Sequence record: MH221129.1
Direction: 5' to 3' (one strand)
Length of the DNA stretch: 64,000 bases
Part shown: positions 6,890 through 58,046 of the stretch, piece after piece
How the letters are laid out: each line of letters opens with the position of its first letter
Position numbering within the stretch: the first letter of the stretch is position 1
Position numbers and translations under genes: made by a program
The notes under the pieces: model-generated
What the model was told of the DNA's origin: nothing
The model's input: only the letters and a program-made list of their open reading frames with translations
The model's database searches: none

Positions 6890-6901
6890 AGCTAATGGCA
6901 T

Positions 6902-7980: not shown

Positions 7981-7991
7981 TACGTTCCCCT

Positions 7992-8408: not shown

Positions 8409-8418
8409 ACCGCCCCCG

Positions 8419-8790
8419 TTAATTGGTTAACGGCCAAACCCCCGGTGATGGAATCGATTCATGCCCACGCCATTTCTTAATTACAACGAGGCTAGAACCT
8501 GGGAAGCCGTTTAGGTCGAAACCGATTGTTGCAACCACATCAACCTCGGTTTCTAAGGTGGAGTGGCCGACCGGGGAGAGATGAGCGAAGCTAACCACCT
8601 TATTACCTTTAATGGCGGTATCGCGAACAATACGTGCCATCTGTCGTATTTCCGTCGAAACGGGACCGTGGAGAGTCGTTACCTGCGTCGACGGTGCTAA
8701 CCATTTATCGTGCTCAGGCGAGACTATGTAAAGAATAGTCCCTTCTTTAAAGAACTGCTTGACCAGTGTTTCAAATTCATCTTGAGTCAT
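8419..8790 (-). CDS. Hypothetical protein
   Basis: Start moved to ATG 8790 after SD AAGGAG. Confidence 0.7.
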   Translation of the reverse strand: MTQDEFETLVKQFFKEGTILYIVSPEHDKWLAPSTQVTTLHGPVSTEIRQMARIVRDTAIKGNKVVSFAHLSPVGHSTLETEVDVVATIGFDLNGFPGSSLVVIKKWRGHESIPSPGVWPLTN

Positions 8791-8803
8791 TTTAAATACT
8801 CCT

Positions 8804-34706: not shown

Positions 34707-34774
34707 AGGCGAATTCCTCTAAGGGTTCAGGTCATAGTATGAACTCGACGACCCTCGGAGAAAAGGAGTATAAA

Positions 34775-38485: not shown

Positions 38486-38497
38486 GGAGAACTCTGA

Positions 38498-42628: not shown

Positions 42629-42662
42629 GACGGACTGTCTACGGACAGTAGTCCGTAGGTAA

Positions 42663-42700
42663 ACCGCCCTTCCTTTTGGGAGGGCGGTCTCCGTTTTATT
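42663..42700 (+). terminator. Terminator-like hairpin between fibre genes 2 and 3
   Basis: ACCGCCCTTCC-TTTT-GGGAGGGCGGT followed by a T-rich stretch. Confidence 0.65.
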
Positions 42701-42720
42701 ACAGATTAGGAGTGTTTGCA

Positions 42721-45700
42721 ATGCCGAGAGAAGATGCGGCGCAGTTTAATGGTACACTAAGTACCCTTACTTACCCGAACAAATATTCGGCGGTGATTCC
42801 TGTAGAGGCACCGTTCTATCGTATCGGTTTAACTTTAACCGTAACCGACCCAGCAACAAACACGAAACGTAAGTTGATTGAAGGTCTCGACTATTACCTG
42901 GGGCATTATTTTAAAGACCAGGCAGAAGCCGAGCAGGATGCAATTTACGGCAGCATCATGTTGCTGAACGCAACCAATATTGAGTACGAACTGCTGGCTG
43001 TTGGCCGTCAGTATCGTATTCCGGCATCAGAAATCGGCAAGGCGTTGGTTAAGACCGACCTGAAAGACCCGCGTAACAGCGATTGGGCCGATTTGATGAA
43101 ATACCCGCCTATCATCGCGCCTATCGATCCTCCGAAGGATTTGGACGAAGCTATCCTGCGTGATGAAGTTGTTAAGGCATTGAATGATATCCGTCTGGGG
43201 ATTATTGCTCGTGCAAGTGAACTGGACGAAGCGTTTACCGACGTTACTAACCTGATTTTCGAAAACGGGAAGAAGGTTTTTGACGATGAGATGTATCAGC
43301 ACCACCTGAACATGAACGCGCACCATTACACTTGTGCTGATATCCGCGCATTGCCGGTATTAGGTAAAGCCGTAGATGCGACGAAAGCGTTTGGCCGTAC
43401 CCTGGCTGAGCTGGTTGACTTGATGTCGACGTCTGGCATTCAACAAAAACACGTTGACATGTTGCTGGACAACACACTCGGTGATTTGCTGGGGCGTATG
43501 CGTGTGCTGAATAACGACGCTATTACGTTCCAGACAACCACAGGTCACGTCATCAGTGTGAAGGGTGAGAAGTTCATCATCACTTCACCACAACCGATGT
43601 TTTTGAAAGCCGACCAGGATAATAACGATCCGGGGATTGCGACGGAGTTTAGTGCGGGGTTGAACACACTGTACGTCCACTCTGGGACAGCGGCTAACGT
43701 GAAAGCGCCGGTGTATAATGGGGTGTATCTGGTAACCCCGGATATGGTTGGGTTGTATTTAACCTCAGTAAAAATCCTGCCCGCAAACGCCTATTTTAAA
43801 TCCAGCGATACGCTGAAGATTTATGGCTCGGGTAAGCAGACCAACCGCGTGTACATGAACGCCGAGTTACCAGGCGCAACCACTACGGTAGAAGGGCTGT
43901 TTGCAATTACCAATCTGTCCACGTCCGTAGCAGCATCCACCGCTATCTCGCAGAAAGCGGTAACCGACCTGAAAGAGTTACTGGATAACTACGTCGATGA
44001 CACGTACACCATTAACGGTAAAGCGTTCATTAAAGACAGTAACGGTGAAATGCATCTGACGTTAACGGCTGCCGATTTTGGCGTTGACAAGATGAACAAC
44101 ACCACGCCGTTGGCTAAGCCGGTAACAAACGCACTGAAAACGGTGCTGGCCGGGAAGGTGGCGTCTGACCACACCCACACCATTGCCGACTTGGACAACG
44201 TGCCGTATGCTTCGACGTCGACGACAGGTCTGGCGAAACTGTGGGACGCAATCGACACAACCGCAGATAAGATGGTGACGTCGCGTCAGGGTTTCCTGCT
44301 TGACGAGCGCATCAACGAGATGAACGAGAAAATCAGCACACTGCTTCCTGCGTGGACGGTGGGTGGTGCCCAGTACGGGAACCAGAGTTTCTTGCCAATT
44401 CCAACCGTCAGTAACTTCGCTGGTTTCGGATTTAACCGTGCTAATCCGTGGGGTGCAGCACGCTATGAAGCGGGTAATGTCTACATGCTTCGTAACGGCT
44501 CTGACGGCCCGGAAGACACTCGGCGTGTTTATTACTGGTACGGCAATGTCGACGCGAACAACAAGTTCACCAACACATACCCGACCGCGTTTCCTTATCA
44601 TCCAGCTGGGATGTCGAAGTTCCCTGGTGTAACGCTGTTGCGGGTATTAACGGCCAGTGAAGACGTCGGCCTGTTTGAGGGCAGCGACGGGGCGAAGTAT
44701 TTGGTATTGTTCAACGGTACCATGAACTACGCCAAACATTCGGAAGTCTATAAAGTCACCTTCCCGGATCTCACCAGAACTACGGGTGGTGCGCTGACCT
44801 ATGATTCAGTGATGTCTTTCATCACTGTGGCACTGGCGAAGACACACGTTGTCTTCATGATGACACACGTTACTAGCGATAGCTTTAAAGTGGGCGGGTG
44901 GTCTGTTGCGTTGAACGCATTAAAAGGGACAGACCCGATTGCCTTCTCCGTGATACCTCTCAGTTACGCGAAAATGAACGGTGATGTTGCCCAAATTGTT
45001 GATGATGGCGCGCCTGAAAACGACAACACCGCAACTACTCGTTTAGCGTACGTGACCCAGGGTGCCCGTGATAAATGGACTCGAACCCGCACGCCGGTTA
45101 ACTACCGCCCGTCGTTCTTTAGCGCGGCGAAACTGAATAACGTTCGTGTGCGTTCTGAGATGCACTCGTATTTCGCGGACGATAAAAGCGCTTCGTGGTC
45201 GGATGCCTGGTCTGTCGTGTACAACGTGGATATCGACACGGGTGTATTAACTGTTGAGAACCCACTCTTCCCAGTAGCCATCACCGAGAATAAAATCGAG
45301 TTCCCGAACGGAACGCGTTATAAGTCAGTCACTAACCGTAACATCGGTGTGGCAATTTACGCAAACTTGTTCGCTAACGCCGACTTCATGATTGACTCTT
45401 GGAGCGACGTTTACTCGAATAACCCGACGAACATCTCAATCACACCGTTAGCAGGTACCGAGTTCTACGACCTGTTAGGAAGTGACACTACGTTGAACGA
45501 GTCCAGCAACGTACAGGTGATTGGGGCAGTAGGTTCGGTCTACAAGCAATACATGCGGGGAATTATCCATTTAGGTGGTGCAGAACGCACGATGTTGTTG
45601 CGCTATCTTGCGACCAGCACCTGCATTTCCATGCGTTACGACTTGACCAATAAATACTTCCCTGATGCAGTTGGCTACGGCCCTGATAACTTGCGTGTCG

Positions 45701-47763
45701 CGCAGGACATCAGTACCTACAACGAGTTCGCTTTGACGCCGAATGTCTGGAAAGGCAACAAGCTGTACCTGAACGGGCGGGTGATTAATGCGGCGGGAAG
45801 TTATCCTTACAAGAATGTCGACGGTACAACCACTTTCACCGCAGACCGGATTACCGTGTCTGACGCATTGTGGGCGAGCCTCGAAACCGCGATCGGTGCA
45901 GCACTCCCTCTGTGGAATGATGCTGAGACCATCGATAAGCAGTTCAACGTACACACCTTCGATATCGGAGGTCTGAACGCTGCGTTCTTGGTAGCGACCT
46001 GTCGTACCTGGGAAAACGCTGACCATATCCGCGCTTATTGCCGCACCACTGTCTGGAAAATTCCGATGACGGTGAATAGCGGTAATGTGTCGTTTGGTAC
46101 AACGGGTTGGGTCGTGGCTGTGCCGGAATGGCGGGATGGTGAGGCAGCAATCTCACTGATGCGCGATCAAGTGGTGAACTCGAAGTTGGTTGCGCGAGAC
46201 GACGGGTATGTCATTCAGTTGGGTGCTATATACCGCAGCGGTGTCGTTGGGGATTCACGTTGGCGTACGTACGTGATGACCTGCGATCAGTCGTTTGACA
46301 ACTGGACAAACACCATGCGGGCGTTTAATCCGGGGATTGCTGAGGCTGATTTGTATATTCAGCCAGAAACGGGTTATATCGGCTACACCAAGTGGTTGTA
46401 TCTGGGCCTGTACGTGGCTGCTGATATTTATCAGAACACTTCTCGAACGTTCGCAACTGGAACACCGGTTGAAACGTATCTGGCGGGTGTAAAAACTGCG
46501 GAAGGCTGGAACCTGTACATCACCGAGGAAGAGTTGCTGTCGTTTGGCTCGTCACGTTATACCATCCCGACCTACGGTGTGGACATTCGTGACTTGTATC
46601 CAACGAACTACAAGAATCGGACGTTGTACATGCACGCGGTGCTTAACAACGGTAATCCGGAATACCAACTGCTGGAACAACAGATGCCCGATACGTCAAC
46701 GCGACTGTACATCGGGTATATGACCAGTGACTCAGAGCGCATCACGTTCAGTAACTTTGATCGTGTGAAACGTCTGGGTGCAGTTAAACAGCTTCTTGAG
46801 CACGAATCTGTTGCCTATCGTCACGATATGGACGTGGGTCGTGACCAGAAACTGGGCAGACTGGGGCCGTTGTATAAGGAACCTATCGGGGCCATCGCTA
46901 CGGACTCCTCTCACGGGTATCTCGACAGTCAACAGCTCTCGAGCGTGGTGGCGGGACAGAAGCGCACCAGAAAAGGCGTCAGCCAGGTGTTTAGCGGATT
47001 GTCGCAGGCTTTGATTACTACACAGTCGAATACTGCGTACAAATACTGGAAGAAGCCAACGAACATCGTGTCGGTTACGGCGGATGAGAGTGCAGAAGGG
47101 GCCGCGTACGGAATGCAGTGGATAGGTGTCCCTCAACCGGCTGTTGTACCTGCAACAACCGACATGGGCATCCTCGTGCGTGGCAAGTACATTATCCCTG
47201 GCACGGTTGGTGATTCCACCGCGTTCGACGTTCGGGTTCTGCTTCCGTTTGGTTCTTCTGGTACGATCATTAATACCGAAGAGCCTGGGGTCGATGTCGA
47301 CATGGACAACGATCCTAACGCTCTGGAGACGCCGGCAGATGGCAGCGTTGTAACGTTACGACGTTACTCCCCCGCTGGGATTGCGTGTACGATTACGATT
47401 CTGGTGGCTATCCCGAAAGACCCGTTAACGGACTTTGGTCTGCGTGACGTTGCATGGCAAATCGTCGACCTCGGCGGTAATGTGGTGGCGCAAGGTGACG
47501 AGTCCAGCTATATCGGGATCGTGCCGTTGGGTACCGCAACGCTGGGTACGCCTGTCGTGTTTAATGCTCGCACTTATACCTTTACGGACGTTGATGGTGC
47601 TATTCCGTTTGTGACAACTGGCGCAGAAGGGATCGCACCTGCACTGGTTTCCACTCCACTCGGAAACGGTGATACTGAAATCACGGTCGCTCATCACTTC
47701 ATGAATGAACGTGGCGAACAAAAGCTTGACGAGGTGCAGGTCAATCTTATGTTCCGTACCTAA
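42721..47763 (+). CDS. Large tail fibre protein 3
   Basis: Start ATG 42721 after SD GGAG (1680 aa); same N-terminal domain, ATTTVEGLFAI, ASTSTTGLAKL, HTH motif. Confidence 0.8.
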   Translation: MPREDAAQFNGTLSTLTYPNKYSAVIPVEAPFYRIGLTLTVTDPATNTKRKLIEGLDYYLGHYFKDQAEAEQDAIYGSIMLLNATNIEYELLAVGRQYRIPASEIGKALVKTDLKDPRNSDWADLMKYPPIIAPIDPPKDLDEAILRDEVVKALNDIRLGIIARASELDEAFTDVTNLIFENGKKVFDDEMYQHHLNMNAHHYTCADIRALPVLGKAVDATKAFGRTLAELVDLMSTSGIQQKHVDMLLDNTLGDLLGRMRVLNNDAITFQTTTGHVISVKGEKFIITSPQPMFLKADQDNNDPGIATEFSAGLNTLYVHSGTAANVKAPVYNGVYLVTPDMVGLYLTSVKILPANAYFKSSDTLKIYGSGKQTNRVYMNAELPGATTTVEGLFAITNLSTSVAASTAISQKAVTDLKELLDNYVDDTYTINGKAFIKDSNGEMHLTLTAADFGVDKMNNTTPLAKPVTNALKTVLAGKVASDHTHTIADLDNVPYASTSTTGLAKLWDAIDTTADKMVTSRQGFLLDERINEMNEKISTLLPAWTVGGAQYGNQSFLPIPTVSNFAGFGFNRANPWGAARYEAGNVYMLRNGSDGPEDTRRVYYWYGNVDANNKFTNTYPTAFPYHPAGMSKFPGVTLLRVLTASEDVGLFEGSDGAKYLVLFNGTMNYAKHSEVYKVTFPDLTRTTGGALTYDSVMSFITVALAKTHVVFMMTHVTSDSFKVGGWSVALNALKGTDPIAFSVIPLSYAKMNGDVAQIVDDGAPENDNTATTRLAYVTQGARDKWTRTRTPVNYRPSFFSAAKLNNVRVRSEMHSYFADDKSASWSDAWSVVYNVDIDTGVLTVENPLFPVAITENKIEFPNGTRYKSVTNRNIGVAIYANLFANADFMIDSWSDVYSNNPTNISITPLAGTEFYDLLGSDTTLNESSNVQVIGAVGSVYKQYMRGIIHLGGAERTMLLRYLATSTCISMRYDLTNKYFPDAVGYGPDNLRVAQDISTYNEFALTPNVWKGNKLYLNGRVINAAGSYPYKNVDGTTTFTADRITVSDALWASLETAIGAALPLWNDAETIDKQFNVHTFDIGGLNAAFLVATCRTWENADHIRAYCRTTVWKIPMTVNSGNVSFGTTGWVVAVPEWRDGEAAISLMRDQVVNSKLVARDDGYVIQLGAIYRSGVVGDSRWRTYVMTCDQSFDNWTNTMRAFNPGIAEADLYIQPETGYIGYTKWLYLGLYVAADIYQNTSRTFATGTPVETYLAGVKTAEGWNLYITEEELLSFGSSRYTIPTYGVDIRDLYPTNYKNRTLYMHAVLNNGNPEYQLLEQQMPDTSTRLYIGYMTSDSERITFSNFDRVKRLGAVKQLLEHESVAYRHDMDVGRDQKLGRLGPLYKEPIGAIATDSSHGYLDSQQLSSVVAGQKRTRKGVSQVFSGLSQALITTQSNTAYKYWKKPTNIVSVTADESAEGAAYGMQWIGVPQPAVVPATTDMGILVRGKYIIPGTVGDSTAFDVRVLLPFGSSGTIINTEEPGVDVDMDNDPNALETPADGSVVTLRRYSPAGIACTITILVAIPKDPLTDFGLRDVAWQIVDLGGNVVAQGDESSYIGIVPLGTATLGTPVVFNARTYTFTDVDGAIPFVTTGAEGIAPALVSTPLGNGDTEITVAHHFMNERGEQKLDEVQVNLMFRT

Positions 47764-47810
47764 CAGACAGCGCTATGGGGCATGGACGCCCCAATCAAAG
47801 GAGTTTGGCA

Positions 47811-49013
47811 ATGGCCGAAATCATTTATCAGTACCCGCTTGACCTTACCGGGACATTAACGTCGAACGCCGTTACGCGGCGCATTACGTTAGGTTCTGGT
47901 AAAGTTAACCGGGCATTTGCTTTTCCCGACGGGGCTTTCTACGCGGACACCTTTCGCTTAGCGGCTTCGAACAAACCAGGAGTCTATCCGTGGAAGCGCG
48001 GCACAGACTACGAACTGGTCTTTGCACATACCGCCTATCAGAAAATGACCAAGAACCGCGAAGTGGTCATGGGTGTGGTGGTAACGAACTCGGCCATTCC
48101 TACCGACATTGAATGCTTTGCACAAGTCGTCGGGGGTATGCAGTCAGCAAACGTCGAGGGGATTCGTCAGGTCATCGCATCGCTGAAAATTGAAGACCGC
48201 GTCGTCGACTTCAAAGACCTGCGCAACGTGCCTGATACCTTCCCGTCAGCACCAACGTATAAAGACCTTGGTGACATCTACGGTTTTGAATACATCATTA
48301 CCGTGTTGGCGGGCATTAAGGATGCCATCAACTCCGGCTCTGCAGTACAGCTGGAACAGATTAAAGGTATCCTGGACGGACTGAAGAACGACTTCATGTC
48401 TGCTCTGACTGCGCACATTAACGCCGAAGGTAACGTCCACCATTTGGACATCCACCAGGCGAATGGTTTAACCGAAACCGAAATTCGTGCCCTTATTCAA
48501 AGCGTGCAGACTGCTATCGATGCTACGATTAAAGACATCGGTGATTTAAAAGCAGCAGATACCGCGTTAGGGCAACGTATTGATGCGATTGTTGCATCTT
48601 TGGCCGCGTGGAATGACCAGCTGAACGCTGTAGCTCAGAACTACCAGAAAGCGATGTTGGCGTTAGCCAACCTCAATGACCTGGTGTTACAGCTGCAGAA
48701 AGCCGTCAATGATCTCCGTAACGAGTTGAATGAAACCAACCAACGTGTGGACGATCTCGAGAGCCAGGGCAAAGACTTCCAACAGCAAATTGATAACCTG
48801 CAGACTCAGATTAACAATCTGAAAACCCAGGTCACCAATAACACCAACGCGATTTCTCAGGCGAACCAAAACCTGGCAAACCACGTTGCTGCGGATAACC
48901 CGCATCCGAACTACCTGCACAAACAGTATGGTGGTGTGGTACAAGCAGCTGTCCACATCAACAACAACCTCACGACACGTGATGATGTTCAGGCGGAAGC
49001 CGGTACTAAGTAA
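47811..49013 (+). CDS. Fibre-family protein with a long coiled-coil
   Basis: Start ATG 47811 after SD AAGGAG (400 aa); YPLDLTG N-terminus like fibre 2, heptad region, HVAADNPH. Confidence 0.8.
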   Translation: MAEIIYQYPLDLTGTLTSNAVTRRITLGSGKVNRAFAFPDGAFYADTFRLAASNKPGVYPWKRGTDYELVFAHTAYQKMTKNREVVMGVVVTNSAIPTDIECFAQVVGGMQSANVEGIRQVIASLKIEDRVVDFKDLRNVPDTFPSAPTYKDLGDIYGFEYIITVLAGIKDAINSGSAVQLEQIKGILDGLKNDFMSALTAHINAEGNVHHLDIHQANGLTETEIRALIQSVQTAIDATIKDIGDLKAADTALGQRIDAIVASLAAWNDQLNAVAQNYQKAMLALANLNDLVLQLQKAVNDLRNELNETNQRVDDLESQGKDFQQQIDNLQTQINNLKTQVTNNTNAISQANQNLANHVAADNPHPNYLHKQYGGVVQAAVHINNNLTTRDDVQAEAGTK

Positions 49014-49020
49014 TTTATTT

Positions 49021-49069
49021 ACGAGCGGGGTCATGTTTATGGAACATGACCCTCTCGTTCTTACTTTTT
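49021..49069 (+). terminator. Long hairpin/terminator between the fibre gene and the Cys-repeat peptide genes
   Basis: ACGAGCGGGGTCATGTT-TATGG-AACATGACCCTCTCGT followed by TCTTACTTTTT. Confidence 0.6.
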
Positions 49070-49080: not shown

Positions 49081-49473
49081 ATGGCGATATCGATTAAAAA
49101 CGTCCGTGACCGCTTGACCAACGTGGAAAACAATATGGCAACACAACCGCGTGTTGACCCACAAGTCGCGACGAAGGCGTATAACGCCGCAGACCGATTT
49201 GCAGGGTGGACGCCAGCGCAGCTGGATTGCGGGGGTACGTGCTCTTGGACGTGTTCCAACGGATGCTCACACGGGTGTTCGAGTTGTTCTGGTAGTTGCT
49301 CGGCCTCATGTATTGGTAGCTGTTCCTCTACATGCGGTGGTAACTGTTCCGGTTGTTCTGGTTGTTCCGGTGGCTGTAGTTCTAGCTGTACAGGTAACTG
49401 CTCAGGTGGGTGCGGTGGTTCTTGTTCATCGAACTGTTCAGGGGCTTGTTCGGGTGGCTGCTCTGGCCGATAG
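49081..49473 (+). CDS. CXXX-repeat Cys/Ser/Gly-rich peptide 1 (putative radical SAM substrate), 130 aa, 21 Cys
   Basis: 49 aa Cys-free leader, then CGGT-CSWT-CSNG-CSHG-CSS-CSGS...CSGR; SD AAGGA. Confidence 0.9.
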   Translation: MAISIKNVRDRLTNVENNMATQPRVDPQVATKAYNAADRFAGWTPAQLDCGGTCSWTCSNGCSHGCSSCSGSCSASCIGSCSSTCGGNCSGCSGCSGGCSSSCTGNCSGGCGGSCSSNCSGACSGGCSGR

Positions 49474-49481
49474 GGGGAATA

Positions 49482-49883
49482 ATGGCAATCGGATTAAAAG
49501 CACTTAAATCTCGACTCGATGTAGTCGATGCTAATGCTTTAAAGAATACCACGAACGTGCAGAACTACATTCGTAACAAGGCAACGAATAACACTGATTT
49601 ATTCGGCGGGCAACCGCGTGCGCATTACGACTGTGGCGGCACCTGTTCGTTTAGCTGCTCAAGCTGCTCCGGTGGATGTACCGGTTCTGCTTCGGGTGGC
49701 TGTGGCTCTACTTGTTCTGCAAACTGTGTCTCTGGTTGCTCCAGTAGTTGTACAGGTTGTAGTTCATCATGTTCGGGCGGTTGCTCCGGCAGCTGTACAG
49801 GTAACTGTTCAGGCGGCTGTGGTAAATCGTGCTCGGCAAACTGTTCTGGTTCTTGCTCTGGCGGATGTTCTGGCCCGATGTAA
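49482..49883 (+). CDS. CXXX-repeat Cys/Ser/Gly-rich peptide 2, 133 aa, 20 Cys
   Basis: Start moved to ATG 49482 after SD GGGGGA; leader MAIGLKALKSRL..., core CGGT-CSFS-CSS-...-CSGPM. Confidence 0.9.
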   Translation: MAIGLKALKSRLDVVDANALKNTTNVQNYIRNKATNNTDLFGGQPRAHYDCGGTCSFSCSSCSGGCTGSASGGCGSTCSANCVSGCSSSCTGCSSSCSGGCSGSCTGNCSGGCGKSCSANCSGSCSGGCSGPM

Positions 49884-49895
49884 TGGAGGTTACCC

Positions 49896-50102
49896 GTGAT
49901 AAGTCTCAAGAACGTTCGAGACCGCCTCGTCACTGCAGAGGGTTATCTCACCACCGCTCAAGCAAACAGCTACATCGCTAACCAGGGAACTGTGTCCACC
50001 ACGAATAACCTGGCGTCTTTACCCTTGTCCCACTATAACTGTAATGGTGGGTGTAGCTGGTCATGTAGCGGAAGCTGCAGCCGTGGCGCAGGAAATCGAT
50101 AA
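49896..50102 (+). CDS. Short CXXX-repeat peptide 3, 68 aa, 4 Cys
   Basis: GTG start after SD GGAGGT; leader MISLKNVRDRL as in peptide 1; core HYN-CNGG-CSWS-CSGS-CSRG. Confidence 0.85.
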   Translation: MISLKNVRDRLVTAEGYLTTAQANSYIANQGTVSTTNNLASLPLSHYNCNGGCSWSCSGSCSRGAGNR

Positions 50103-50129
50103 TGGCGCTTTAAAAGTTTGGAGTATTAA

Positions 50130-51017
50130 ATGAAGAACGATTTGCATCTTGCGTATAAAACCACGTTTAACCACCCACTGCATTTGTCATCACCCGACTC
50201 GGTTCGTGCACATCTTGCCGATCAGGTACGCTTGATTGCACAGATTCCTGGCGAGTGGCCAAAGGTACGTGGACGTTTTCTTACCAATCCGGAAAACTAT
50301 ACCGTTGAAAATACGTTTAAGATCCGTGATATGGAAGCCCAAAGCATTGTTATCTTCAACGGCGATGGTAACTCTCGTGGGGTGTTGGTTGGCGGGAAGT
50401 ATTTCTTCAGTGAAGGGATTTTGAATAACAGTGTGGACTTAGAATTAATGTTCACACCGTTTGATGAACTGGAAGCGAAACCGATGGCACGCCGTTGGTG
50501 GAGTCCGGATTATCTCGGTTCTTTCCCGTACTACTTTGTGCTGGTTCCAGTAGAAACTGAAACCTACTTTGATACCGAGCCGTATATCGATATCGAAGGC
50601 TACAAAGAGTTAGGCATCACCTGTCTCGCGGATATGATGGCGTATAGCTATAAGTTCGTCTGGGACAAACGTCGTTCGGTCTGGTACGCACTGACTGATG
50701 AGTTTGAAATCACTAAACGTATCCGCAAACCGTGGATGCAGCATTTAGTGCAGACCCGTCACGGTGATTATCCAGCAACCGAAGCCGACTTAAGTAAGCT
50801 GGTCAGTTTCTTACTGACGAAAGTTGACCTTACCGACGAAGAAGCGGAAGCGGTCTCTGAGTTCCGTTCCCGTGCTGTAACGTTGGCCGACTTAAAACGT
50901 CTGAACGAACGCCAGTACGACCTGAACAAAATCCTGGCCGCCTATCACTCGCCAATGCTGCTTGTGCCGGGGGCTAATGTAAACGAAGATCCTTTATTCG
51001 CTATTGACTATATTTAA
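50130..51017 (+). CDS. Hypothetical protein in the Cys-repeat/rSAM cluster
   Basis: 295 aa, SD GGAG; no recognisable family. Confidence 0.8.
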   Translation: MKNDLHLAYKTTFNHPLHLSSPDSVRAHLADQVRLIAQIPGEWPKVRGRFLTNPENYTVENTFKIRDMEAQSIVIFNGDGNSRGVLVGGKYFFSEGILNNSVDLELMFTPFDELEAKPMARRWWSPDYLGSFPYYFVLVPVETETYFDTEPYIDIEGYKELGITCLADMMAYSYKFVWDKRRSVWYALTDEFEITKRIRKPWMQHLVQTRHGDYPATEADLSKLVSFLLTKVDLTDEEAEAVSEFRSRAVTLADLKRLNERQYDLNKILAAYHSPMLLVPGANVNEDPLFAIDYI

Positions 51018-51038
51018 AAAATACTGGAGCAACCTGCA

Positions 51039-51956
51039 ATGACAGACAAAGTAGAATCCAGGATCTCGTCTGAACTGTATGACAAACCGTCAATCCTGTC
51101 GGTTGTCACAACGTCTAAGTGTAACTTAGACTGTAGCTTCTGTGGAGGAGCCTATTACATGGATCGCGAGGACACTTCTCGTGAATTTCAACGCAGCCAG
51201 ATTATGGAACAGCTTGAGCTGAACCCTGGCATTCAGGAGATTCACTGGACGGGCGGTGAGCCGTTACTGGCACAGCGTAAAATTGAAGATTTCTTCTTCG
51301 AGCTTAAAGAATCACACCCGCACCTCAAACATCAGATGTACACCAACGGTTTAAAGATGCGTAAGTCGCATCTGCCGATGCTGAAACAGTTCGACGTCAT
51401 TTTCGTGTCTATCGACGGCTACACCAAGTCGGAACGTCCGTTTATGAACTTCATTAACGGCGGTAACCACGAAGCGTTGGAAACGCTGTATGAGCTGGAC
51501 AACTATTACAGTTGGGGTGTCATGACCCGCGACCAGCTTGGTGACAAGCGTTGGTACGAAGACTTCATCGAGTTGCACCGTGCGCTGTATCACTACCGTC
51601 CAGGTGGTGTGTCGTTGCTGTTCGATGCGATGATGCCTAAACCGCTCTCGCCAGACCACGTCATGAACTTCATGTACGGATACTGGAAGATTCTGGATAA
51701 TATCGAACGTCTGAATATGCAGAATGACACGGAATGTGGCTTGGCTATCAGCAAAATGTTTGATACCGAGTGTAACATCTGTAGCGAAGTGCTGTGGTTA
51801 AATGCCGATGGTGCCATCGAGCAAAACCAAAACGCTCCAGAGATTGTGAGTGTGGGCTGTAACCGACTGGCACGTTCCATCGGGGTTGAAGCTTACAATT
51901 ACATCAACCGTGTTATTTCTGCTAAACGTATTCGGGCGGCTAAAAATGAGCAATGA
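51039..51956 (+). CDS. Radical SAM enzyme 1 (short C-terminal Cys cluster, Twitch-like)
   Basis: CNLDCSFC (CX3CX2C), TGGEPLL, YTNG, VSIDG; extra Cys in ECG, CNIC and GCNR. Confidence 0.92.
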   Translation: MTDKVESRISSELYDKPSILSVVTTSKCNLDCSFCGGAYYMDREDTSREFQRSQIMEQLELNPGIQEIHWTGGEPLLAQRKIEDFFFELKESHPHLKHQMYTNGLKMRKSHLPMLKQFDVIFVSIDGYTKSERPFMNFINGGNHEALETLYELDNYYSWGVMTRDQLGDKRWYEDFIELHRALYHYRPGGVSLLFDAMMPKPLSPDHVMNFMYGYWKILDNIERLNMQNDTECGLAISKMFDTECNICSEVLWLNADGAIEQNQNAPEIVSVGCNRLARSIGVEAYNYINRVISAKRIRAAKNEQ

Positions 51957-53274
51957 CCAACCCATCCAGTATACCCCTCGCACTTATCAGGTCGTAACTA
52001 ACCTGTCGTGCAACCTCGACTGCGAATATTGCTACGAGCGTAAATACCCGCGTAACAACAAAGCTGCTGACGTCATCGACTTTATCCACGCCTGTTTTGA
52101 GCGTGATAAAGATATCGAAAACGTAGAAGTCATCATCGATATCATCGGTGGTGAGCCGTTCATGCAGCCGAAGTTGCTGATTGCTGCTTTTGAAACCGCA
52201 GAAGAGTTGTGCAAAATTCACAGCCGTCCGTACATGTTCAGTATTTCCACGAACGGTACGCTGCTCGATCGCCCACTGAACCGTGAGATTATCGACCGCT
52301 GGAAAGACAAGCTGTCTATCGGTGTGTCTATCGATGGTCTGCCGGAAGTACACGACAAATACCGTATCTTTACAACTACCCGTGAAGGGTCGTATGAAGC
52401 TGCGGTGAAAGGGTACAACTACCTGAAAGAAGTCGGTATCGCAGAACTGGGCGTTAAAGCAACCTTCACCATCGACACATTGCCGCATTACGGCGCGAGC
52501 ATGAAGTCGCTGATTGACATGGCGGGCGGTGGTACTATCTCCGGTAACGTAACGTACGAAGACATTCTGCCTCGTTCGATGGCGTTGGATATCGCTGCGC
52601 AGATGATGGACGTGATGGACTACTGGGTGGAAAAAGGTTTACACACCAACCCGCGTAACATCATCACCCACATCATTCCCGATGGCCTGGACTTCATGCA
52701 AATCTGGGACCCTGACTGGCGTGATAAACTGCTGCACGACGACACGGTACGTCTGAACCCAGACCGCCTGCGTCCTTACTGCGGTACGCTGACGCACATG
52801 ACTTGCTTAGGTTTCGACCGTAAGATTTATGGTTGTAACCGATTCATGTCGACAGTTACTACACGTTCTGCTGTTGCGGAGCTGGTTGGCCGTGAGTTCG
52901 TTAGCCTGGATGGCGGTGCGCTGCTGGAAGAAATTCAGACTCAGTACACCAACTACCCGGAAACCTGCCTGGGTTGCCCAATGAAACACAGCTGCGGTAG
53001 CTGCGCCGCTGCGTCTTACGAGAACGGCGAAGGGACACTGGAAGACCGTAAAGCATACCACGCTGAGCGTCGCCAGTGTGGTTGGACCACCGCTAAGCTG
53101 ATGGCTGCGGAATACTGGTTCCAGAAAATGGGCAGCACCAAAGGTTCTGACTTCCATGACAAGTCAGTCTGCTATTGTGCACGTTGTGTGCGCCAACGCA
53201 AAGAAGCGAATATAAAACAACTATCCGGAGTTCAGAATGAAGTCGATACTGATTCACAATTTTACGAAGCGTAA
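51946..53274 (+). CDS. Radical SAM/SPASM peptide maturase (CXXX-repeat target type)
   Basis: Start moved to ATG 51946. CNLDCEYC, IGGEPF, ISTNG, VSIDG; SPASM Cys pattern YCGTLTHMTC..IYGC..CLGCPMKHSCGSC..QC; extra CYCARC. Confidence 0.92.
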   Translation: MSNDQPIQYTPRTYQVVTNLSCNLDCEYCYERKYPRNNKAADVIDFIHACFERDKDIENVEVIIDIIGGEPFMQPKLLIAAFETAEELCKIHSRPYMFSISTNGTLLDRPLNREIIDRWKDKLSIGVSIDGLPEVHDKYRIFTTTREGSYEAAVKGYNYLKEVGIAELGVKATFTIDTLPHYGASMKSLIDMAGGGTISGNVTYEDILPRSMALDIAAQMMDVMDYWVEKGLHTNPRNIITHIIPDGLDFMQIWDPDWRDKLLHDDTVRLNPDRLRPYCGTLTHMTCLGFDRKIYGCNRFMSTVTTRSAVAELVGREFVSLDGGALLEEIQTQYTNYPETCLGCPMKHSCGSCAAASYENGEGTLEDRKAYHAERRQCGWTTAKLMAAEYWFQKMGSTKGSDFHDKSVCYCARCVRQRKEANIKQLSGVQNEVDTDSQFYEA

Positions 53275-53803
53275 ACTACATCTGGTAGATCGTTTCTTGC
53301 GTAAGAAGAAACTCTACAACGTTCACGCTATCGTGTCCGGTGAAGACTTCACGGACGAGATTCAGGGCTTGCTGGTGAAGTACGGCCTGAATGTTATTAT
53401 CCCTGTTACGTGTGTTGAACAGGGCCACGAATCGGTAGCGGAAATCGAGAAGCGTAACCCAGGTTTCGAAGCGCGTGTGTTGGCGTACCCTCGCCACAAA
53501 ATCGAACTGCTTCGTCACTCGGGTTTGGAGCCTAGCCCGGAGAGTATTATTGCTCTCGGCCTGTCTTTCCCGCGCTTGCGCATTCGCAACCTGCGTAACA
53601 CTACGCCGGTAGATGCCTACTACACTGAGCGTCAGATGTTTGAAGAATTCCTTTTCCCGCAGCTGGAAGAGGAAGAACAACATCAGATTTCGGTGCTGTG
53701 GGGCGGCGACCTCGATCAGAGCTTCTCATTGCTGGACTTCGGTTTGCTATTTGAACTTGACCTGATTGAGGAGGACGAATGTCTGCTTCTGACAAAAGCC
53801 TGA
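53237..53803 (+). CDS. Hypothetical protein in the rSAM cluster
   Basis: 188 aa, SD GGAG, overlaps the rSAM2 3' end. Confidence 0.75.
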   Translation: MKSILIHNFTKRKLHLVDRFLRKKKLYNVHAIVSGEDFTDEIQGLLVKYGLNVIIPVTCVEQGHESVAEIEKRNPGFEARVLAYPRHKIELLRHSGLEPSPESIIALGLSFPRLRIRNLRNTTPVDAYYTERQMFEEFLFPQLEEEEQHQISVLWGGDLDQSFSLLDFGLLFELDLIEEDECLLLTKA

Positions 53804-54450
53804 CGAAAGATGAAATTCGCGCTCGTTATTTTGAGCGCGATTTACCTATCGACCGGCACGGTAACTACATGGAGCGTATCGGGGCACAAGACCAGGGTCG
53901 TACCGGGTTCTGTGCGCTGTTGCATTACCATTTGATCGAAGGTATGTCCGACAAAGACGCACTGGCCAAGATGAAACTGTACGAAATGTCAGCCATCGAA
54001 GCCAACTTCACACTGAAACGTGCAAAAGAGTTCATTTCCGATGTTCTGGAAATCGACCTGGACGACATTCGTAAGAACATGAAGTCCACCGCACGTTACA
54101 TCTACGAAGATGTGCAGAAGATGCTGCAGGAGTTAGACCACCGCTACGAAGACCAACGTCACGGATTCATCGAGTTCGAAGGGTGTCATTTCCAGGCGGA
54201 TGAAAACTCCCGTTCTATCCTCGGGCAATACATCCAGGCGAACCATGCTCCGGAATACTGGCTTGACACCACCAATACACGCATTGAGCCGTTTAGCGTG
54301 GAACAGTGTCAGGCGCTGTTAGCTGCCATTGTACAGCGTGACCAGGAACTCCACGCGACGATGTCAGACGCGAAGAAACAGATTCGTGTACTGGCAGAAG
54401 CGCGGGACTTCACCGGCCTGAAAGCGTTGCAAGAACAGCTTGGCATGTAA
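53779..54450 (+). CDS. Protein with a C-terminal DUF4376-like (tail-fibre assembly-associated) domain
   Basis: FEGCHFQADENSRSILG..YWLDTTNTRIEPFSVEQCQALLAAI..AKKQIR pattern; SD GAGGAGG. Confidence 0.65.
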   Translation: MSASDKSLTKDEIRARYFERDLPIDRHGNYMERIGAQDQGRTGFCALLHYHLIEGMSDKDALAKMKLYEMSAIEANFTLKRAKEFISDVLEIDLDDIRKNMKSTARYIYEDVQKMLQELDHRYEDQRHGFIEFEGCHFQADENSRSILGQYIQANHAPEYWLDTTNTRIEPFSVEQCQALLAAIVQRDQELHATMSDAKKQIRVLAEARDFTGLKALQEQLGM

Positions 54451-54452: not shown

Positions 54453-54497
54453 AAAAAAGAAAGTCCTCTCTACCCTAGGGTAGAGAGGTGCTTTTAT
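54453..54497. terminator. Bidirectional intrinsic terminator ending the fibre/rSAM unit
   Basis: CCTCTCTACCC/GGGTAGAGAGG stem with A-run and T-run flanks. Confidence 0.85.
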
Positions 54498-55007
54498 TTA
54501 ATTGAACCCATCGAGGTCGCCGTACTTGGTCTGCAGATTATCCTTACCATCGTAAACACGGTACACCATTGCGCCCGTCCACTTTAGATGCTCAGAATCA
54601 ATCTTAACTTTGAATTCCGTCCAATCTTTCCCATCGTTCCCCGAACCCATCACCGTCAAAGTGATTTCGTCCAGGGTAAGTTTATGATCAGGTAAGAACT
54701 GATTAAAGTTGTACAAAACAAATTTGGGATCTGACCAGTAAGCTACCACATCGCCCATCGCTACGGTATAAACGTCTTCACCGTTCGGATGGGTGAAATC
54801 AAATCTTCGATAGTGGTATTCTTTACTTCCTGCGAATGGACTGGCCGACTTTGCCGTCAACGTGAGCGCGGTATTACGCACATCGCCTTCCGTAGACGAA
54901 GCGTGTTTTGCCGGGCTACTGAAATCTACATCAGCCAACGTCAGACCCAACCCTGGGTTCTTGGCATTCACTAAATCAATGATTTCTTCTTGCAAAGTCT
55001 TAGCCAT
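54498..55007 (-). CDS. Virion paralog family A member (C-terminal GDLDGF motif)
   Basis: NPGL..L..DV, RNTALTLTAKSASPFAGSKEYHYRR, ends KYGDLDGFN; start ATG 55007. Confidence 0.8.
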   Translation of the reverse strand: MAKTLQEEIIDLVNAKNPGLGLTLADVDFSSPAKHASSTEGDVRNTALTLTAKSASPFAGSKEYHYRRFDFTHPNGEDVYTVAMGDVVAYWSDPKFVLYNFNQFLPDHKLTLDEITLTVMGSGNDGKDWTEFKVKIDSEHLKWTGAMVYRVYDGKDNLQTKYGDLDGFN

Positions 55008-55024
55008 CTGCAATCTCCAGGGGG

Positions 55025-55540
55025 TTAGTTAAAACCGTCCAATTCGCCATCAAGGCGACCGAGGTCTCTGACTTTTGGTGTTATCGTGTAGGTGAACCCC
55101 AGATGTCCGTTATCTGGCGGTAAGAACTTAATGCTGTTGGCGATGGAAACCATTACCACCAGGCGTCCATCTTCTGTCTCACTCCGACCGATGGTGAGTT
55201 CTTGCGCAGTAAATGCGTCGTCCGGCCAGGTTTGCTGTAGCCGCGCATTCATTTGGTCGAGCACGTAAGCGTCGTCATCCCAACGTTCCGGATTGCTTGA
55301 GTTCCAGGCGTCGTCGGTAATTCCCGATGGAACACGGTTATAGTAGATAGTCATCGACCCAGCGAAATAGAGCGATTCTTCTTTCGCTGTGAGATACGAC
55401 ATCGTATTCCATTTGTTGGGATCTGGACTACCCATCATCGGGTTGTCGTAAATCTCGATATCATCTAAAGTTGCCGGATGGGGTAAATTGGGATTGGCTG
55501 CATTATACAGCGCGAGGAGTTGCTCTTTTGAAGATGCCAT
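55025..55540 (-). CDS. Virion paralog family A member
   Basis: NAANPNLPHP, NTMSYLTAKEESLYFAG..YYNR, ends DGELDGFN. Confidence 0.8.
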   Translation of the reverse strand: MASSKEQLLALYNAANPNLPHPATLDDIEIYDNPMMGSPDPNKWNTMSYLTAKEESLYFAGSMTIYYNRVPSGITDDAWNSSNPERWDDDAYVLDQMNARLQQTWPDDAFTAQELTIGRSETEDGRLVVMVSIANSIKFLPPDNGHLGFTYTITPKVRDLGRLDGELDGFN

Positions 55541-55629
55541 GATGGGCTCCTTGTGTTGCGAAAAGAAAGTCCATGTGGTTCGCCATCTAAGCGTGGTGAT
55601 ACCCGTGCAGGTGAATTATTTTAGAGTAA

Positions 55630-56169
55630 TTAGTTAGGGACACCAAAGCCGTCTAACTCGCCGTTCGTCGTGGAAAGATCAGTTTTCACAACAGCTTCAT
55701 AGATCGAGTAGACGATAACCGCATCTTCAAATTTCATGTGGTTACGAATAGTGATGGTGATATCCAACGTTTGTGCGTTCTCACCTTCAGCACGACTAAT
55801 GGAGAAACTTCCGTTCTCACCGCTGTCGTCTGGCCCCAGTTCATCAATAGGGTACTGACGTTGTAAGTCGGCGTTCAGCTGGGTGAGAACTGCACTGTCT
55901 TCAGCCCAATCGCTGTGATTACCGTCGATGGTTTCACCTGTGAAACCAACAGGTAAACGACGATACACGAGCGAGATATCGCCAGTGAAATACTGACTTT
56001 CTGCTTTGGCTGAGATGTTCAGAATAAAATTAGCAAGACTCTCACCTTCGGGAGTCTTGCTACTGCGTGAACCCGCAGAGAAGTCATTAACCGTTAATGG
56101 GTGTGGTAGGGTAGGGTTAGCCGCGTTGTACAAATCACACAGTTGCTGTTTGGTCGAAATCGTTGCCAT
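55630..56169 (-). CDS. Virion paralog family A member
   Basis: NAANPTLPHP, SAKAESQYFTG..YRR, ends VKTDLSTTNGELDGFGVPN. Confidence 0.8.
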   Translation of the reverse strand: MATISTKQQLCDLYNAANPTLPHPLTVNDFSAGSRSSKTPEGESLANFILNISAKAESQYFTGDISLVYRRLPVGFTGETIDGNHSDWAEDSAVLTQLNADLQRQYPIDELGPDDSGENGSFSISRAEGENAQTLDITITIRNHMKFEDAVIVYSIYEAVVKTDLSTTNGELDGFGVPN

Positions 56170-56190
56170 GGTTACTCCTTAGTGGCAATT

Positions 56191-56220
56191 AAAAAATAAA
56201 AGAGGGGCCGTAGCCCCTCT
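56191..56220 (-). terminator. Intrinsic terminator with a cUACGg loop
   Basis: AGAGGGGC-TACG-GCCCCTCT plus a T-run. Confidence 0.8.
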
Positions 56221-56227
56221 GGCTTAT

Positions 56228-56761
56228 TTAGTTAGGAACGCCGAAACCGTCCAGTTCACCGTTAGTGGTGCTCAGGTCAGTCTTCACGATCTCCTGGGTG
56301 ATGGTGTAGACCGCAATAGTGCCTTCCTGGTATTTGATGTGACCATCTTTTACCAGTACGGTAATCACTTTCGCACCGTCCTGACCATCAGTACGTTCGA
56401 AAGTCAGTTCACTGACCGCGAAAGCATCATCGGGGCGACCTTTGGCTTGCAAGTCGGTGTTAACAAAAGCCAGCACTTCTTCGTCGGTGTCCCAGTCCGC
56501 CTGATCGGCAGTAACGGCTTTGTTACCGATGAGGTTAGCAGAAGCCATGCGGGTGTAGTGTAATTCTTTCTCGCCGGTGAAATACTGAGACCCACCGACT
56601 GCGGTGATCGTGAGTTTGGTATTACGGCCATCGACCGGGTCAGCAACATAGTCACTTGCCGTGCCGAAGGTAACATCCGCAGAGGTTAACGCTTGCGCCA
56701 GACCGGAGTTTTTGGTGTTGAACAAAGCAACGAGTTGATCTTGAAATGAAACAATAGCCAT
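56228..56761 (-). CDS. Virion paralog family A member
   Basis: GRNTKLTITA..SQYFTGEKELHYTR, ends VKTDLSTTNGELDGFGVPN. Confidence 0.8.
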   Translation of the reverse strand: MAIVSFQDQLVALFNTKNSGLAQALTSADVTFGTASDYVADPVDGRNTKLTITAVGGSQYFTGEKELHYTRMASANLIGNKAVTADQADWDTDEEVLAFVNTDLQAKGRPDDAFAVSELTFERTDGQDGAKVITVLVKDGHIKYQEGTIAVYTITQEIVKTDLSTTNGELDGFGVPN

Positions 56762-56886: not shown

Positions 56887-57399
56887 ATGAAACATTTACT
56901 TTTCGTCTTTGCATTTATTAGCCTATTGACAGGCTGTGCCATGGCACCCGATAGCAAGGGTCAGTTCAGCACTGTCCCAGTAACCAACCATGACATGGTT
57001 ATCTATACCTGTACCGGGGCTAACGAAACTTTCTCTGACTTCCGTCCAGAGTTAAGCAATTTACAATTGTTACCTCGCGCCGTTACAGTTATCGACGTAG
57101 GTGCTAATTGGGTGGCAACCTGGAAAGGCAACAAGCTGGAATCGCCCCAACTGTATAAAGACCTGCTCGGTAAAGTCGATGGGAATATTGATCCTATTAC
57201 CGGTCAACGTTTCTATAGACTGAATGCTGTTCTGTCAGGTTCGCCAACATTCTCGTATTCTACGGTGAACCCGACAACTGGTTCAGGCAAGGGGATGACG
57301 TTCTTCCGTTGTACAATCGGGTCAATTGATGAGCCGGCCACACCGATGCTGATTACACCCTCGCCAGACCAAAGCGCCGATAAAGTCGACGCGAAATAA
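56887..57399 (+). CDS. Lipoprotein of unknown function
   Basis: MKHLLFVFAFISLLTG-C lipobox; lone plus-strand gene with its own terminator. Confidence 0.8.
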   Translation: MKHLLFVFAFISLLTGCAMAPDSKGQFSTVPVTNHDMVIYTCTGANETFSDFRPELSNLQLLPRAVTVIDVGANWVATWKGNKLESPQLYKDLLGKVDGNIDPITGQRFYRLNAVLSGSPTFSYSTVNPTTGSGKGMTFFRCTIGSIDEPATPMLITPSPDQSADKVDAK

Positions 57400-57530: not shown

Positions 57531-58046
57531 TTAGATGTTGACTAAGCGGCTCCAATCGATAGGCTTCTGTTTCACCACTTTAACGGTGCCACGGGACGGT
57601 GACCAGTAAGTAATGTCGGGCTGGTTACGCACATCAACGTGAAGCCAGGTGATGTCACATTCAATAAAGTGAATGAACGGGAACTCATCTGGATGATCCG
57701 CGATATAGTCGTGCACCTGTTGCAATGGGGTGTCCAACATCGTGGCATCGAACGCATTACCGAACTTGTGCATACTGCCTGAATCAGAATACGCTTTGTA
57801 AGCCCGTGTCTGATAATCGCCGCCCTTTGGTTTCTCCTGGTTAATGAAGAACTGCAGGGTACGCAGACTGCGTTGTTGTTGCGCACTGGTGAGAATCACC
57901 ATACGACCGAAGCGGTTACGAATCTGTTGCAGCGAAATTAACAGCAGCGGGTTTAAGAAGCGGATAGCCCCTTCACCGTATTTGCTGATGTACTCTTGCG
58001 GCACCAGTTCTTTTAAAGAAAAGTTCGAAGGGTTGGGATGGTACAT
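57531..58046 (-). CDS. Peptidase M15-family zinc peptidase (peptidoglycan hydrolase)
   Basis: NFSLKEL, LQQIRNRFG, SMHKFGNAFD (H-x6-D), WLHVDVR. Confidence 0.85.
   Translation of the reverse strand: MYHPNPSNFSLKELVPQEYISKYGEGAIRFLNPLLLISLQQIRNRFGRMVILTSAQQQRSLRTLQFFINQEKPKGGDYQTRAYKAYSDSGSMHKFGNAFDATMLDTPLQQVHDYIADHPDEFPFIHFIECDITWLHVDVRNQPDITYWSPSRGTVKVVKQKPIDWSRLVNI

Follow-up and report, generated by a model that had tools for sequence, protein, structure and literature searches.

A giant Salmonella phage encodes, directly after its tail-fibre genes, three small proteins built of Cys-x-x-x repeats and two radical-SAM enzymes that probably cross-link them. In several unrelated phages and one prophage, the same repeat is the C-terminal end of proteins that match tail-fibre families. 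We analysed a 64,000-nucleotide stretch (called the window here) of sequence record MH221129.1, which belongs to the SPN3US-like jumbo phage SPAsTU/STsAS. Eight genes lie on one strand between 49081 and 54450: three Cys-repeat proteins (pep1, pep2 and pep3), a 295-aa accessory protein, a small radical-SAM enzyme (rSAM1), a SPASM-type radical-SAM enzyme (rSAM2), a 188-aa protein and a DUF4376 protein (Table 1). The last four genes overlap by 11, 38 and 25 nt. An earlier note, made from the sequence alone, had inferred a RiPP-like modification system whose products are virion or fibre parts rather than secreted bacteriocins. Both inferences are supported, although the thioether chemistry and the presence of the products in virions are inferred. 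We found no paper on this system.

Table 1. Features of the Cys-repeat module and its surroundings in the window.
Feature	Coordinates	Strand	Product	Description
Fibre-candidate genes	34739-49013			Homologues of SPN3US gp170, gp169 and gp168, plus gp167
gp167 homologue	47775-49013	+		Coiled-coil virion (non-head) protein; start annotated at 47811 in the SPAsTU record
Hairpin	49027-49053	+		12-bp hairpin followed by a T-rich tail; looks like a terminator or attenuator
pep1	49081-49473	+	130 aa	Cys-x-x-x repeat protein, 21 Cys
pep2	49482-49883	+	133 aa	Paralogue, 20 Cys
pep3	49896-50102	+	68 aa	Short paralogue, 4 Cys; GTG start
Accessory protein	50130-51017	+	295 aa	Proposed substrate-handling partner (inferred)
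rSAM1	51039-51956	+	305 aa	Radical-SAM enzyme without a SPASM domain
rSAM2	51946-53274	+	442 aa (from the annotated ATG)	Radical-SAM enzyme with a SPASM-type C-terminal domain; probable cross-linking enzyme
188-aa protein	53237-53803	+	188 aa	Unknown role; conserved in the SPN3US-like clade
DUF4376 protein	53779-54450	+	223 aa	Possible fibre-assembly helper (inferred)
Hairpin	54465-54488			Palindromic, 10-bp stem, T tracts on both sides; two-way terminator-like site closing the module and the convergent genes

The genes upstream of the module include homologues of SPN3US gp170, gp169 and gp168, which have been called baseplate/tail-fibre candidates (PMC5694885). The gp167 homologue is the last fibre-region gene before the module and shows coiled-coil Pfam hits over residues ~200-370. 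The gp167 protein was detected in SPN3US virions (PMC5694885), and it is a possible attachment partner. Both hairpins were identified by a scan for terminator consensus features only. The earlier note had placed the two-way terminator at 54453, which we correct here.

The first protein, pep1, has a 49-aa N-terminal region and an 81-aa core. The core is made of Ser, Gly and Cys, with no acidic residue. The Cys residues are spaced by 4 residues in 17 of 20 gaps in pep1 and in 16 of 19 gaps in pep2. The short paralogue pep3 has the same N-terminal region and junction but only three Cys-x3-Cys units. The same Cys-run criterion, when applied to all six frames of the 64-kb window, found only pep1 and pep2. 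A 157-aa ORF that starts at GTG 49410 is only the mechanical upstream extension of pep2. The homologue of pep3 in pEa_SNUABM_29 starts with ATG at the same place as the GTG start here. All three proteins match phrog_6085, a phage protein family of unknown function, over the full profile (E=6e-42, 8e-42 and 1.5e-23 for pep1, pep2 and pep3, respectively). Against TIGR04114, the Cys-rich repeat target family, they scored 18.9, 15.1 and 13.6 bits, below the cut-off of 20, and a search of a local Pfam copy gave no hit; the repeat is also Pfam family PF27846.

Public records miss these genes or annotate them in the wrong frame. Substitution patterns show that the Cys frame is the coding frame. Compared with SPN3US, 69 of 91 differences in pep1 fall at third codon positions. 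The ratio of synonymous to non-synonymous codon changes is 60:15 in the Cys frame, against 9:71 and 7:72 in the other forward frames. The ratio for pep3 is 24:6, and the substitution pattern of pep2 also supports the Cys frame. The pep1 core differs from SPN3US at 2 of 81 aa but at 49 of 243 nt, while the N-terminal region differs at 13 of 49 aa. Thus, the core is under strong purifying selection. This is the reverse of the usual RiPP pattern, in which the leader is more conserved than the core, and it fits a structural constraint.

The larger enzyme, rSAM2, was compared with 64 profile families. The best hit was TIGR04115, the radical SAM maturase of the CXXX-repeat target family (121.8 bits, E=4e-35), followed by PapB, the freyrasin ranthipeptide maturase (NF047865; 108.5 bits). 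Both scores are far below the respective cut-offs of 350 and 340 bits. The note had named TIGR04114 and TIGR04115, and these are indeed the best hits, albeit below their cut-offs. The radical-SAM CX3CX2C motif (C23, C27 and C30) is conserved, and seven C-terminal Cys residues (C280, C298, C342, C345, C351, C354 and C379) are invariant in 29 sequences. The SPASM model TIGR04085 gave 25.7 bits against a cut-off of 27, so the domain is borderline by profile but complete by motif. The best solved relative is the SCIFF/thermocellin maturase CteB (PDB ID: 5wgg; E=8e-10 over the radical-SAM core), with the SPASM Cys motif aligning weakly. CteB acts on a six-Cys peptide and has an N-terminal recognition domain of about 100 residues, with its cluster motif at residue ~106. 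In rSAM2, the motif is at residue ~22, and only ~20 residues precede it, leaving no N-terminal recognition domain.

The smaller enzyme, rSAM1, matches PF04055 (E=1e-14). It carries the cluster motif CNLDCSFC and two to three conserved C-terminal Cys residues (C245 and C274, with C248 in most sequences). The accessory protein belongs to phrog_8030 and has 38 representatives among 1.84 billion proteins. Its AF2 model is confident (pLDDT 88), but no Foldseek hit was obtained at E<=0.001. The 188-aa protein belongs to phrog_7988 and is predicted to be an alpha/beta partial barrel (AF2 pLDDT 89.5). Only weak Foldseek matches were found, none at E<=0.001; the best TM-score was to the SkfB core (TMq 0.54), and there was no profile similarity to the radical-SAM enzymes. 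These structure searches found no recognition-element fold in either model, though a novel one cannot be excluded. Residues 121-207 of the DUF4376 protein match PF14301 with 41.1 bits against a cut-off of 25. This domain is common in phage tail proteins, and the protein also matches phrog_2837, annotated as 'tail protein' (E=2e-7).

The cluster is syntenic in Seoulvirus, Erskinevirus, Derbicusvirus and Wellingtonvirus. The Cys count is kept at 20-23 in these four genera, and pep3 is present in all of them. The module is confined to the SPN3US-like clade and does not extend to Chimalliviridae at large. We then examined 79 viral contigs encoding a relative of rSAM2. Of these, 78 carry a Cys-repeat ORF on the same strand, and none was found on the opposite strand. 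In the window, the three repeat proteins lie 1.8-2.9 kb upstream of rSAM2. Relatives on viral contigs score 155-513 bits against TIGR04115, and the true members (434-513 bits) lie in head and tail gene modules. An alternative is that the Cys residues stay as free thiolates that bind metal ions along a fibre or in the cell, like a metallothionein, or that they hold iron-sulfur clusters, while the radical-SAM enzymes act on something else, for example the large fibre proteins. The core is about 25% Cys with small neighbouring residues, metal ions probably occur on the fibre axes of some other phages, and the metal-loaded option raised in the note is not excluded by any test here. However, the near-universal same-strand linkage argues that the repeats are the substrate, and the characterised relatives of this enzyme clade consume the thiol to form thioethers (PMC13692751). 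We consider the metal-binding alternative unlikely.

A link to fibres comes from loci in other phages and a Deferribacter prophage (numbered with the prefix L here). Proteins in L028 and L033 match tail-fibre PHROGs (2e-40 and 1.4e-31, respectively). In L028 this match lies ahead of the Cys-repeat end, and the L033 protein also matches phrog_6085 at its C-terminal end. The fibre-like proteins of L008, L009, L029 and L034 match phrog_6085 from inside the 'leader' onwards, and PF27846 is recorded for that of L009. L011 has a coiled-coil protein with a Cys-repeat tail. The pre-core segment of pep2 (NKATNNTDLFGGQPRAHYDCGGTCSFSC) resembles the pre-repeat segment of fibre proteins in other phages, as in L008 (DKATNADQLGGQAGSYYRCSDCSWTC). 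In four of these loci the small radical-SAM enzyme is also present, and three also carry the accessory protein. The accessory protein is homologous to proteins of 250 aa in L008 (E=7e-12), 241 aa in L033 (95.7%) and 257 aa in L011 (97.5%). rSAM1 is homologous to a 263-aa protein in L008 (E=4e-12) and is fused to an rSAM2-like domain in L033.

The layout formally resembles a RiPP cluster, with an N-terminal region, a Cys-rich core and a SPASM enzyme, and genome-mining tools would label it so. It is nevertheless very unlikely that the peptides are cut from their leaders and freed at lysis as bacteriocin-like or signalling molecules. None of the eight genes matches a protease, transporter or immunity family in the profile searches. 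The core is more conserved than the 'leader', and in other phages the 'leader' is a whole tail-fibre protein. The cluster also lies inside the late structural region, between fibre and head genes.

The published SPN3US virion proteome (PMC5694885) lists gp167-173 but none of gp161-166. The absence of the enzymes and helper proteins is as expected for maturation factors. That search could not have found pep1-3, because two of them are unannotated and gp166 is in the wrong frame; moreover, the cores have no tryptic sites. There is no direct evidence that the peptides are in virions. The Cys-repeat proteins could instead be chaperone-like caps or scaffolds that help the large fibre proteins trimerise and are then shed, with the modification only stabilising this helper. 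In other phages the module sits at the extreme C-terminus of fibre proteins, where removable intramolecular chaperone domains appear to be usual, and here it is encoded separately, next to a DUF4376 tail-associated protein. On the other hand, two radical-SAM enzymes and about 20 modifications per chain are costly for a discarded helper. The core is almost invariant with a conserved Cys count, and some relatives carry up to 92 consecutive repeats (L041), which looks like a structure with length rather than a cap. We regard a transient assembly factor as improbable, although it is the strongest of the alternatives.

We favour, somewhat more than not, a late, tail-region module that makes covalently modified Cys-repeat proteins for the fibre or baseplate periphery. 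In this view, pep1-3 are split-off versions of a domain that in other phages forms the C-terminal end of tail-fibre proteins. Their N-terminal ~50 residues are therefore more likely a structural or docking segment than a leader that is cut off. Judging from its family, rSAM2 most likely turns the ~20 regularly spaced Cys residues of pep1 and pep2 into a ladder of thioether cross-links. We infer that rSAM1 works with it, either on a subset of sites or on the invariant junction just before the repeats, and that the 295-aa protein would present the substrate, because rSAM2 has no recognition domain of its own; these roles, like that of the 188-aa protein, are guesses. A plausible rationale is that disulfides cannot form in the reducing cytoplasm where virions are built, whereas thioethers can. 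The result would be a thin, rigid rod resistant to proteases and redox changes.

The TIGR04114/TIGR04115 family, on which we found no experimental work, likewise pairs a radical-SAM/SPASM enzyme with proteins that have Cys at every fourth residue. The subgroup described here adds a second, small radical-SAM enzyme and a 250-295-aa accessory protein, and its junction carries an invariant Cys/Gly/Cys/Ser set plus a near-invariant Trp. PapB is also a SPASM enzyme without a long N-terminal domain, and it probably makes many small thioether rings on a repeat-type precursor, but it acts on a short bacterial peptide and not on a phage structural module. PapB appears to link Cys to an acidic residue; the phage cores contain no Asp or Glu, so the acceptor must differ. 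CrpC of Methanococcus voltae, a SPASM radical-SAM enzyme, installs ranthionine thioethers on CrpA, a large, repeat-containing Cys-rich protein with a leader-like N-terminal region (PMC13692751), showing that such enzymes modify proteins as well as short peptides. That system is archaeal and cellular, with a possible role in iron-sulfur mineral use; it has a 17-residue repeat with a Cys-x-x-Gln/Asp motif, and the enzyme has its own recognition element. In the maturation of quinohemoprotein amine dehydrogenase (QhpD/QhpC), a radical-SAM/SPASM enzyme makes thioether cross-links in a protein that stays part of a larger assembly (PMC13692751). There, three Cys-Asp/Glu links are made in an enzyme subunit without a repeat, and rSAM2 scores far below the cut-off of TIGR03906 (55 against 453 bits).

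A more speculative possibility, which we consider doubtful but which remains compatible with the data, is that pep1, pep2 and pep3 form a heterotrimer, matching the three-fold symmetry of phage fibres. The two radical-SAM enzymes would staple their Cys repeats, within and perhaps between chains, into a thioether 'ladder' rod. This would be a protein fibre architecture not yet described, serving as the distal or receptor-contacting end of a baseplate fibre. More broadly, the whole TIGR04114/TIGR04115 'RiPP' family would not be a natural-product pathway. It would be a widespread phage virion-maturation system (more than 400 viral loci) and the first case of radical-SAM post-translational modification of virus structural proteins.

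The 5.4-kb region is 100 % identical to Salmonella phages SPAsTU and STsAS and about 80 % identical in DNA to SPN3US and its relatives (Seoulvirus, a nucleus-forming jumbo-phage group). It lies after four large genes whose SPN3US homologues are gp170, gp169 and gp168, which have been called baseplate/tail-fibre candidates, and gp167. All four were detected in virions (PMC5694885). The earlier note had described three Cys-repeat peptides, two radical-SAM enzymes and further genes directly after the fibre genes, and this observation was confirmed: three Cys-rich ORFs (pep1, pep2 and pep3) are followed by five more genes, of which the last four overlap by 11-38 nt. Shine-Dalgarno-like purine runs precede pep1, pep2, pep3 and the 295-aa gene. 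The hairpin between the gp167 homologue and pep1 may set the ratio of fibre-gene to module transcripts. A scan for sigma-70 promoters was at chance level (6 found, 7.0 expected), as expected for this kind of phage. The features are collected in the table.

Coordinates of the features in the window and in the related records
Record	Coordinates	Strand	Feature
Window	34739-49013	+	Four large genes preceding the module
Window	49027-49053	+	12-bp hairpin with a T-rich tail, between the gp167 homologue and pep1
Window	49081-49473		pep1, 21 Cys
Window	49482-49883		pep2, 20 Cys
Window	49896-50102		pep3, 4 Cys
Window			Accessory protein, 295 aa
Window			rSAM1, 305 aa
Window	ATG at 51946		rSAM2, 442 aa
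Window			188-aa protein
Window			DUF4376 protein, 223 aa
Window	54465-54488	both	Palindromic hairpin with T tracts on both strands
Window	54498-56761 and 57531-58046	-	Four tandem paralogues of 171-179 aa, plus a fifth nearby
Window	56887-57399	+	170-aa ORF with a lipoprotein-like N-terminus, homologue of SPN3US gp159
L003 (SPN3US)	3477-3812		ORF annotated across the Cys-repeat genes in the wrong frame or on the wrong strand
L004 (public phage record)	3099-3311 and 3546-3818		ORFs annotated across the Cys-repeat genes in the wrong frame or on the wrong strand
L006 (CR5)	3377-3589		ORF annotated across the Cys-repeat genes in the wrong frame or on the wrong strand
L003 (SPN3US)	5082-5876		SPN3US_0164, small radical-SAM gene as annotated; full ORF 4962-5876
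L006 (CR5)	5202-5981		CR5_154, small radical-SAM gene as annotated; full ORF 5106-5981
L033 (284-kb viral contig)	7137-9197		686-aa ORF, fused small and SPASM-type radical-SAM enzymes
L041 (viral contig)	5756-7198		Very long Cys-repeat protein

The Cys residues of pep1, pep2 and pep3 are spaced four residues apart in 17 of 20, 16 of 19 and 3 of 3 gaps, respectively. The residues between them are almost only Ser, Gly, Thr, Asn and Ala, with no acidic residue. Such repetitive DNA is open in several frames, and public records disagree about it. SPAsTU annotates none of the three genes, SPN3US annotates one ORF (gp166) in a different frame, and pEa_SNUABM_29 and CR5 annotate reverse-strand ORFs across them. 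The three genes are missing or mis-framed in dozens of jumbo-phage records. The substitution pattern settles the question. For pep1 against SPN3US, 69 of 91 differences are at third codon positions, and synonymous to non-synonymous codon changes are 60:15 in the Cys frame, against 9:71 and 7:72 in the other forward frames. pep2 and pep3 behave the same way. Selection is strongest on the core: pep1 differs from SPN3US at 49 of 243 core bases but only 2 of 81 core residues, while its N-terminal region differs at 13 of 49 residues.

Both enzymes match the Pfam Radical_SAM family. The best NCBIfam hits of rSAM2 are TIGR04115 (121.8 bits, cut-off 350) and PapB (108.5 bits, cut-off 340), both below their cut-offs. 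An alignment of 29 homologues keeps the CX3CX2C motif and seven C-terminal Cys invariant, and the SPASM model reaches 25.7 bits against a cut-off of 27. The best solved-structure relative is CteB. Unlike CteB, rSAM2 has only about 20 residues before its cluster motif, so it has no N-terminal recognition domain. rSAM1 has the cluster motif and two to three conserved C-terminal Cys, but no SPASM domain. In SPN3US and CR5 it is annotated from an internal Met, which removes the CX3CX2C cluster motif; the full ORFs contain it.

Pfam gave no family for the peptides, the 295-aa protein or the 188-aa protein, and NCBIfam gave none for the 295-aa and DUF4376 proteins. The AlphaFold model of the 295-aa protein is confident (pLDDT 88), but a Foldseek search against the PDB gave no hit at E<=0.001. 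For the 188-aa model, the same search gave only weak partial TIM-barrel or radical-SAM-core-like hits. Profile comparison with hhalign did not support the 188-aa protein being a degenerate radical-SAM domain, or matching the C-terminal extension of the enzyme at locus L009 (on a 213-kb contig), as the probabilities were only 0.2-9 %.

Using tblastn, we found rSAM2 in 80 phage records and the pep2 N-terminal region in 71. These are essentially the same SPN3US-like set, which infects Salmonella, Escherichia, Proteus, Erwinia and Cronobacter; other Chimalliviridae were not among the hits. In about ten SPFM records (LR5359xx; SPFM1, 5, 6, 8, 9, 10, 12, 14), the rSAM2 match comes back in 2-6 pieces at 42-62 % identity, unlike their sister records (one piece, 90 %), which looks like a sequence-quality problem in those records rather than biology. 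The eight-gene order is kept in Seoulvirus, Erskinevirus, Derbicusvirus and Wellingtonvirus. The Cys counts are nearly constant, with 21 for pep1 and 20-23 for pep2. All twelve paralogues compared share invariant C50, G52, C54 and S55 and a near-invariant W56 at the junction.

More distant rSAM2 homologues (25-40 % identity) are almost all on viral or prophage DNA. Of 79 IMG/VR loci returned for the enzyme profile, 78 carry a Cys-repeat ORF on the strand of the enzyme and none on the other strand. In several lineages (loci given here by their L numbers), this ORF is a large protein with the repeats at its C-terminal end. It has 568 aa in L009/L010, where it is precomputed as PF27846, and 302 aa in L008, a Deferribacter abyssi prophage, where it follows a gpJ-like tail gene. 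The corresponding proteins have 469 aa in L028, 437 aa in L033 (a 284-kb viral contig), 401 aa in L034 and about 250 aa in L029 and L032. In L011, it is a 271-aa coiled coil with a Cys-repeat tail. L028 and L033 match many tail-fibre PHROGs (E down to 2e-40 and 1.4e-31). The C-terminal parts of L008, L009, L029, L033 and L034 match phrog_6085, the family of the window's peptides, and in L008, L009, L029 and L034 the match starts inside what would be the 'leader'. The segments before the repeats are visibly alike: window pep2 reads NKATNNTDLFGGQPRAHYDCGGTCSFSC and L008 reads DKATNADQLGGQAGSYYRCSDCSWTC. We found no significant similarity between the gp167 homologue and the N-terminal parts of the Cys-repeat fibre proteins of L008, L009 and L011, and no split-gene origin from gp167 can therefore be claimed.

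The partner proteins travel together. The 295-aa protein is homologous to the gene directly upstream of the enzymes in L008 (E=7e-12), L033 (95.7 %) and L011 (97.5 %), whereas the 224-aa gene of L009 is not a detectable homologue. rSAM1 is homologous to the small enzyme of L008. In L033, the two enzymes are a single ORF, which lies directly after a 241-aa accessory homologue and a tail-fibre protein with a Cys-repeat end. The accessory family is very small, with 38 representatives among 1.84 billion proteins.

Enzymes of other viral loci score from 155 to 513 bits on TIGR04115. True members (L041, L058 and L063) therefore also lie on viral contigs, next to proteins with up to 92 consecutive repeats, and their neighbours include major-head, virion-structural and tail-fibre genes. 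Some relatives, in L041 and in L091-L093 (Termititenax and Margulisiibacteriota contigs), have very long Cys-repeat proteins, with 87 to 110 Cys-x3-Cys units in proteins of 480-670 aa. The window's enzyme belongs to a divergent branch that has acquired a second enzyme and the accessory protein.

The 86-protein SPN3US virion list contains gp167-173, gp160 and gp157, but none of gp161-166. This fits the enzymes and helper proteins being non-structural. It says nothing about the peptides, which were absent from the annotated protein set and whose cores have no tryptic sites; proteomic searches against the annotated protein sets could therefore not have detected them. On the far side of the module, one of the tandem paralogues on the minus strand was scanned and matches PF25613 (DUF7941). 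SPN3US has fewer copies here (gp160 and gp158), and gp160 is an abundant head protein of 'paralog family B'. This phage has therefore expanded the family locally. The 170-aa ORF among these convergent head-protein paralogues begins with a hydrophobic stretch ending in a Cys and has no Pfam hit.

The best reading of these data, with moderate confidence, is a fibre-associated, enzyme-cross-linked Cys-repeat protein set, whose presence in the virion is inferred. The earlier note had inferred a RiPP-like modification system whose products are more plausibly virion parts than secreted bacteriocins, and this interpretation is supported by distribution and domain architecture, but not yet by chemistry. 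A secreted RiPP is argued against by the lack of a protease, exporter or immunity gene, by a core that is more conserved than the leader, and by a 'leader' that is a fibre protein elsewhere. A shed assembly helper, or metal binding by free thiols, is not excluded. The chemistry is inferred from family membership and from the 2026 demonstration that a SPASM enzyme installs ranthionine links on a large Cys-rich archaeal protein (PMC13692751). The acceptor cannot be the acidic residue used by PapB or QhpD. Full-text literature searches found no paper on a phage Cys-repeat/radical-SAM system.

If the products are fibre parts, phages use radical-SAM chemistry to build covalently cross-linked virion structures inside the reducing cytoplasm, a kind of virus maturation that, as far as we could find, has not been described. 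It would also give enzymologists a new substrate class, namely about 20 to more than 90 tandem Cys-x3 units without acidic acceptors, handled by a two-enzyme system with an accessory protein of unknown fold. It would change how 'ranthipeptide/RiPP-like' clusters found by genome mining in prophages and viral contigs are read; many may be structural modules rather than antibiotics.
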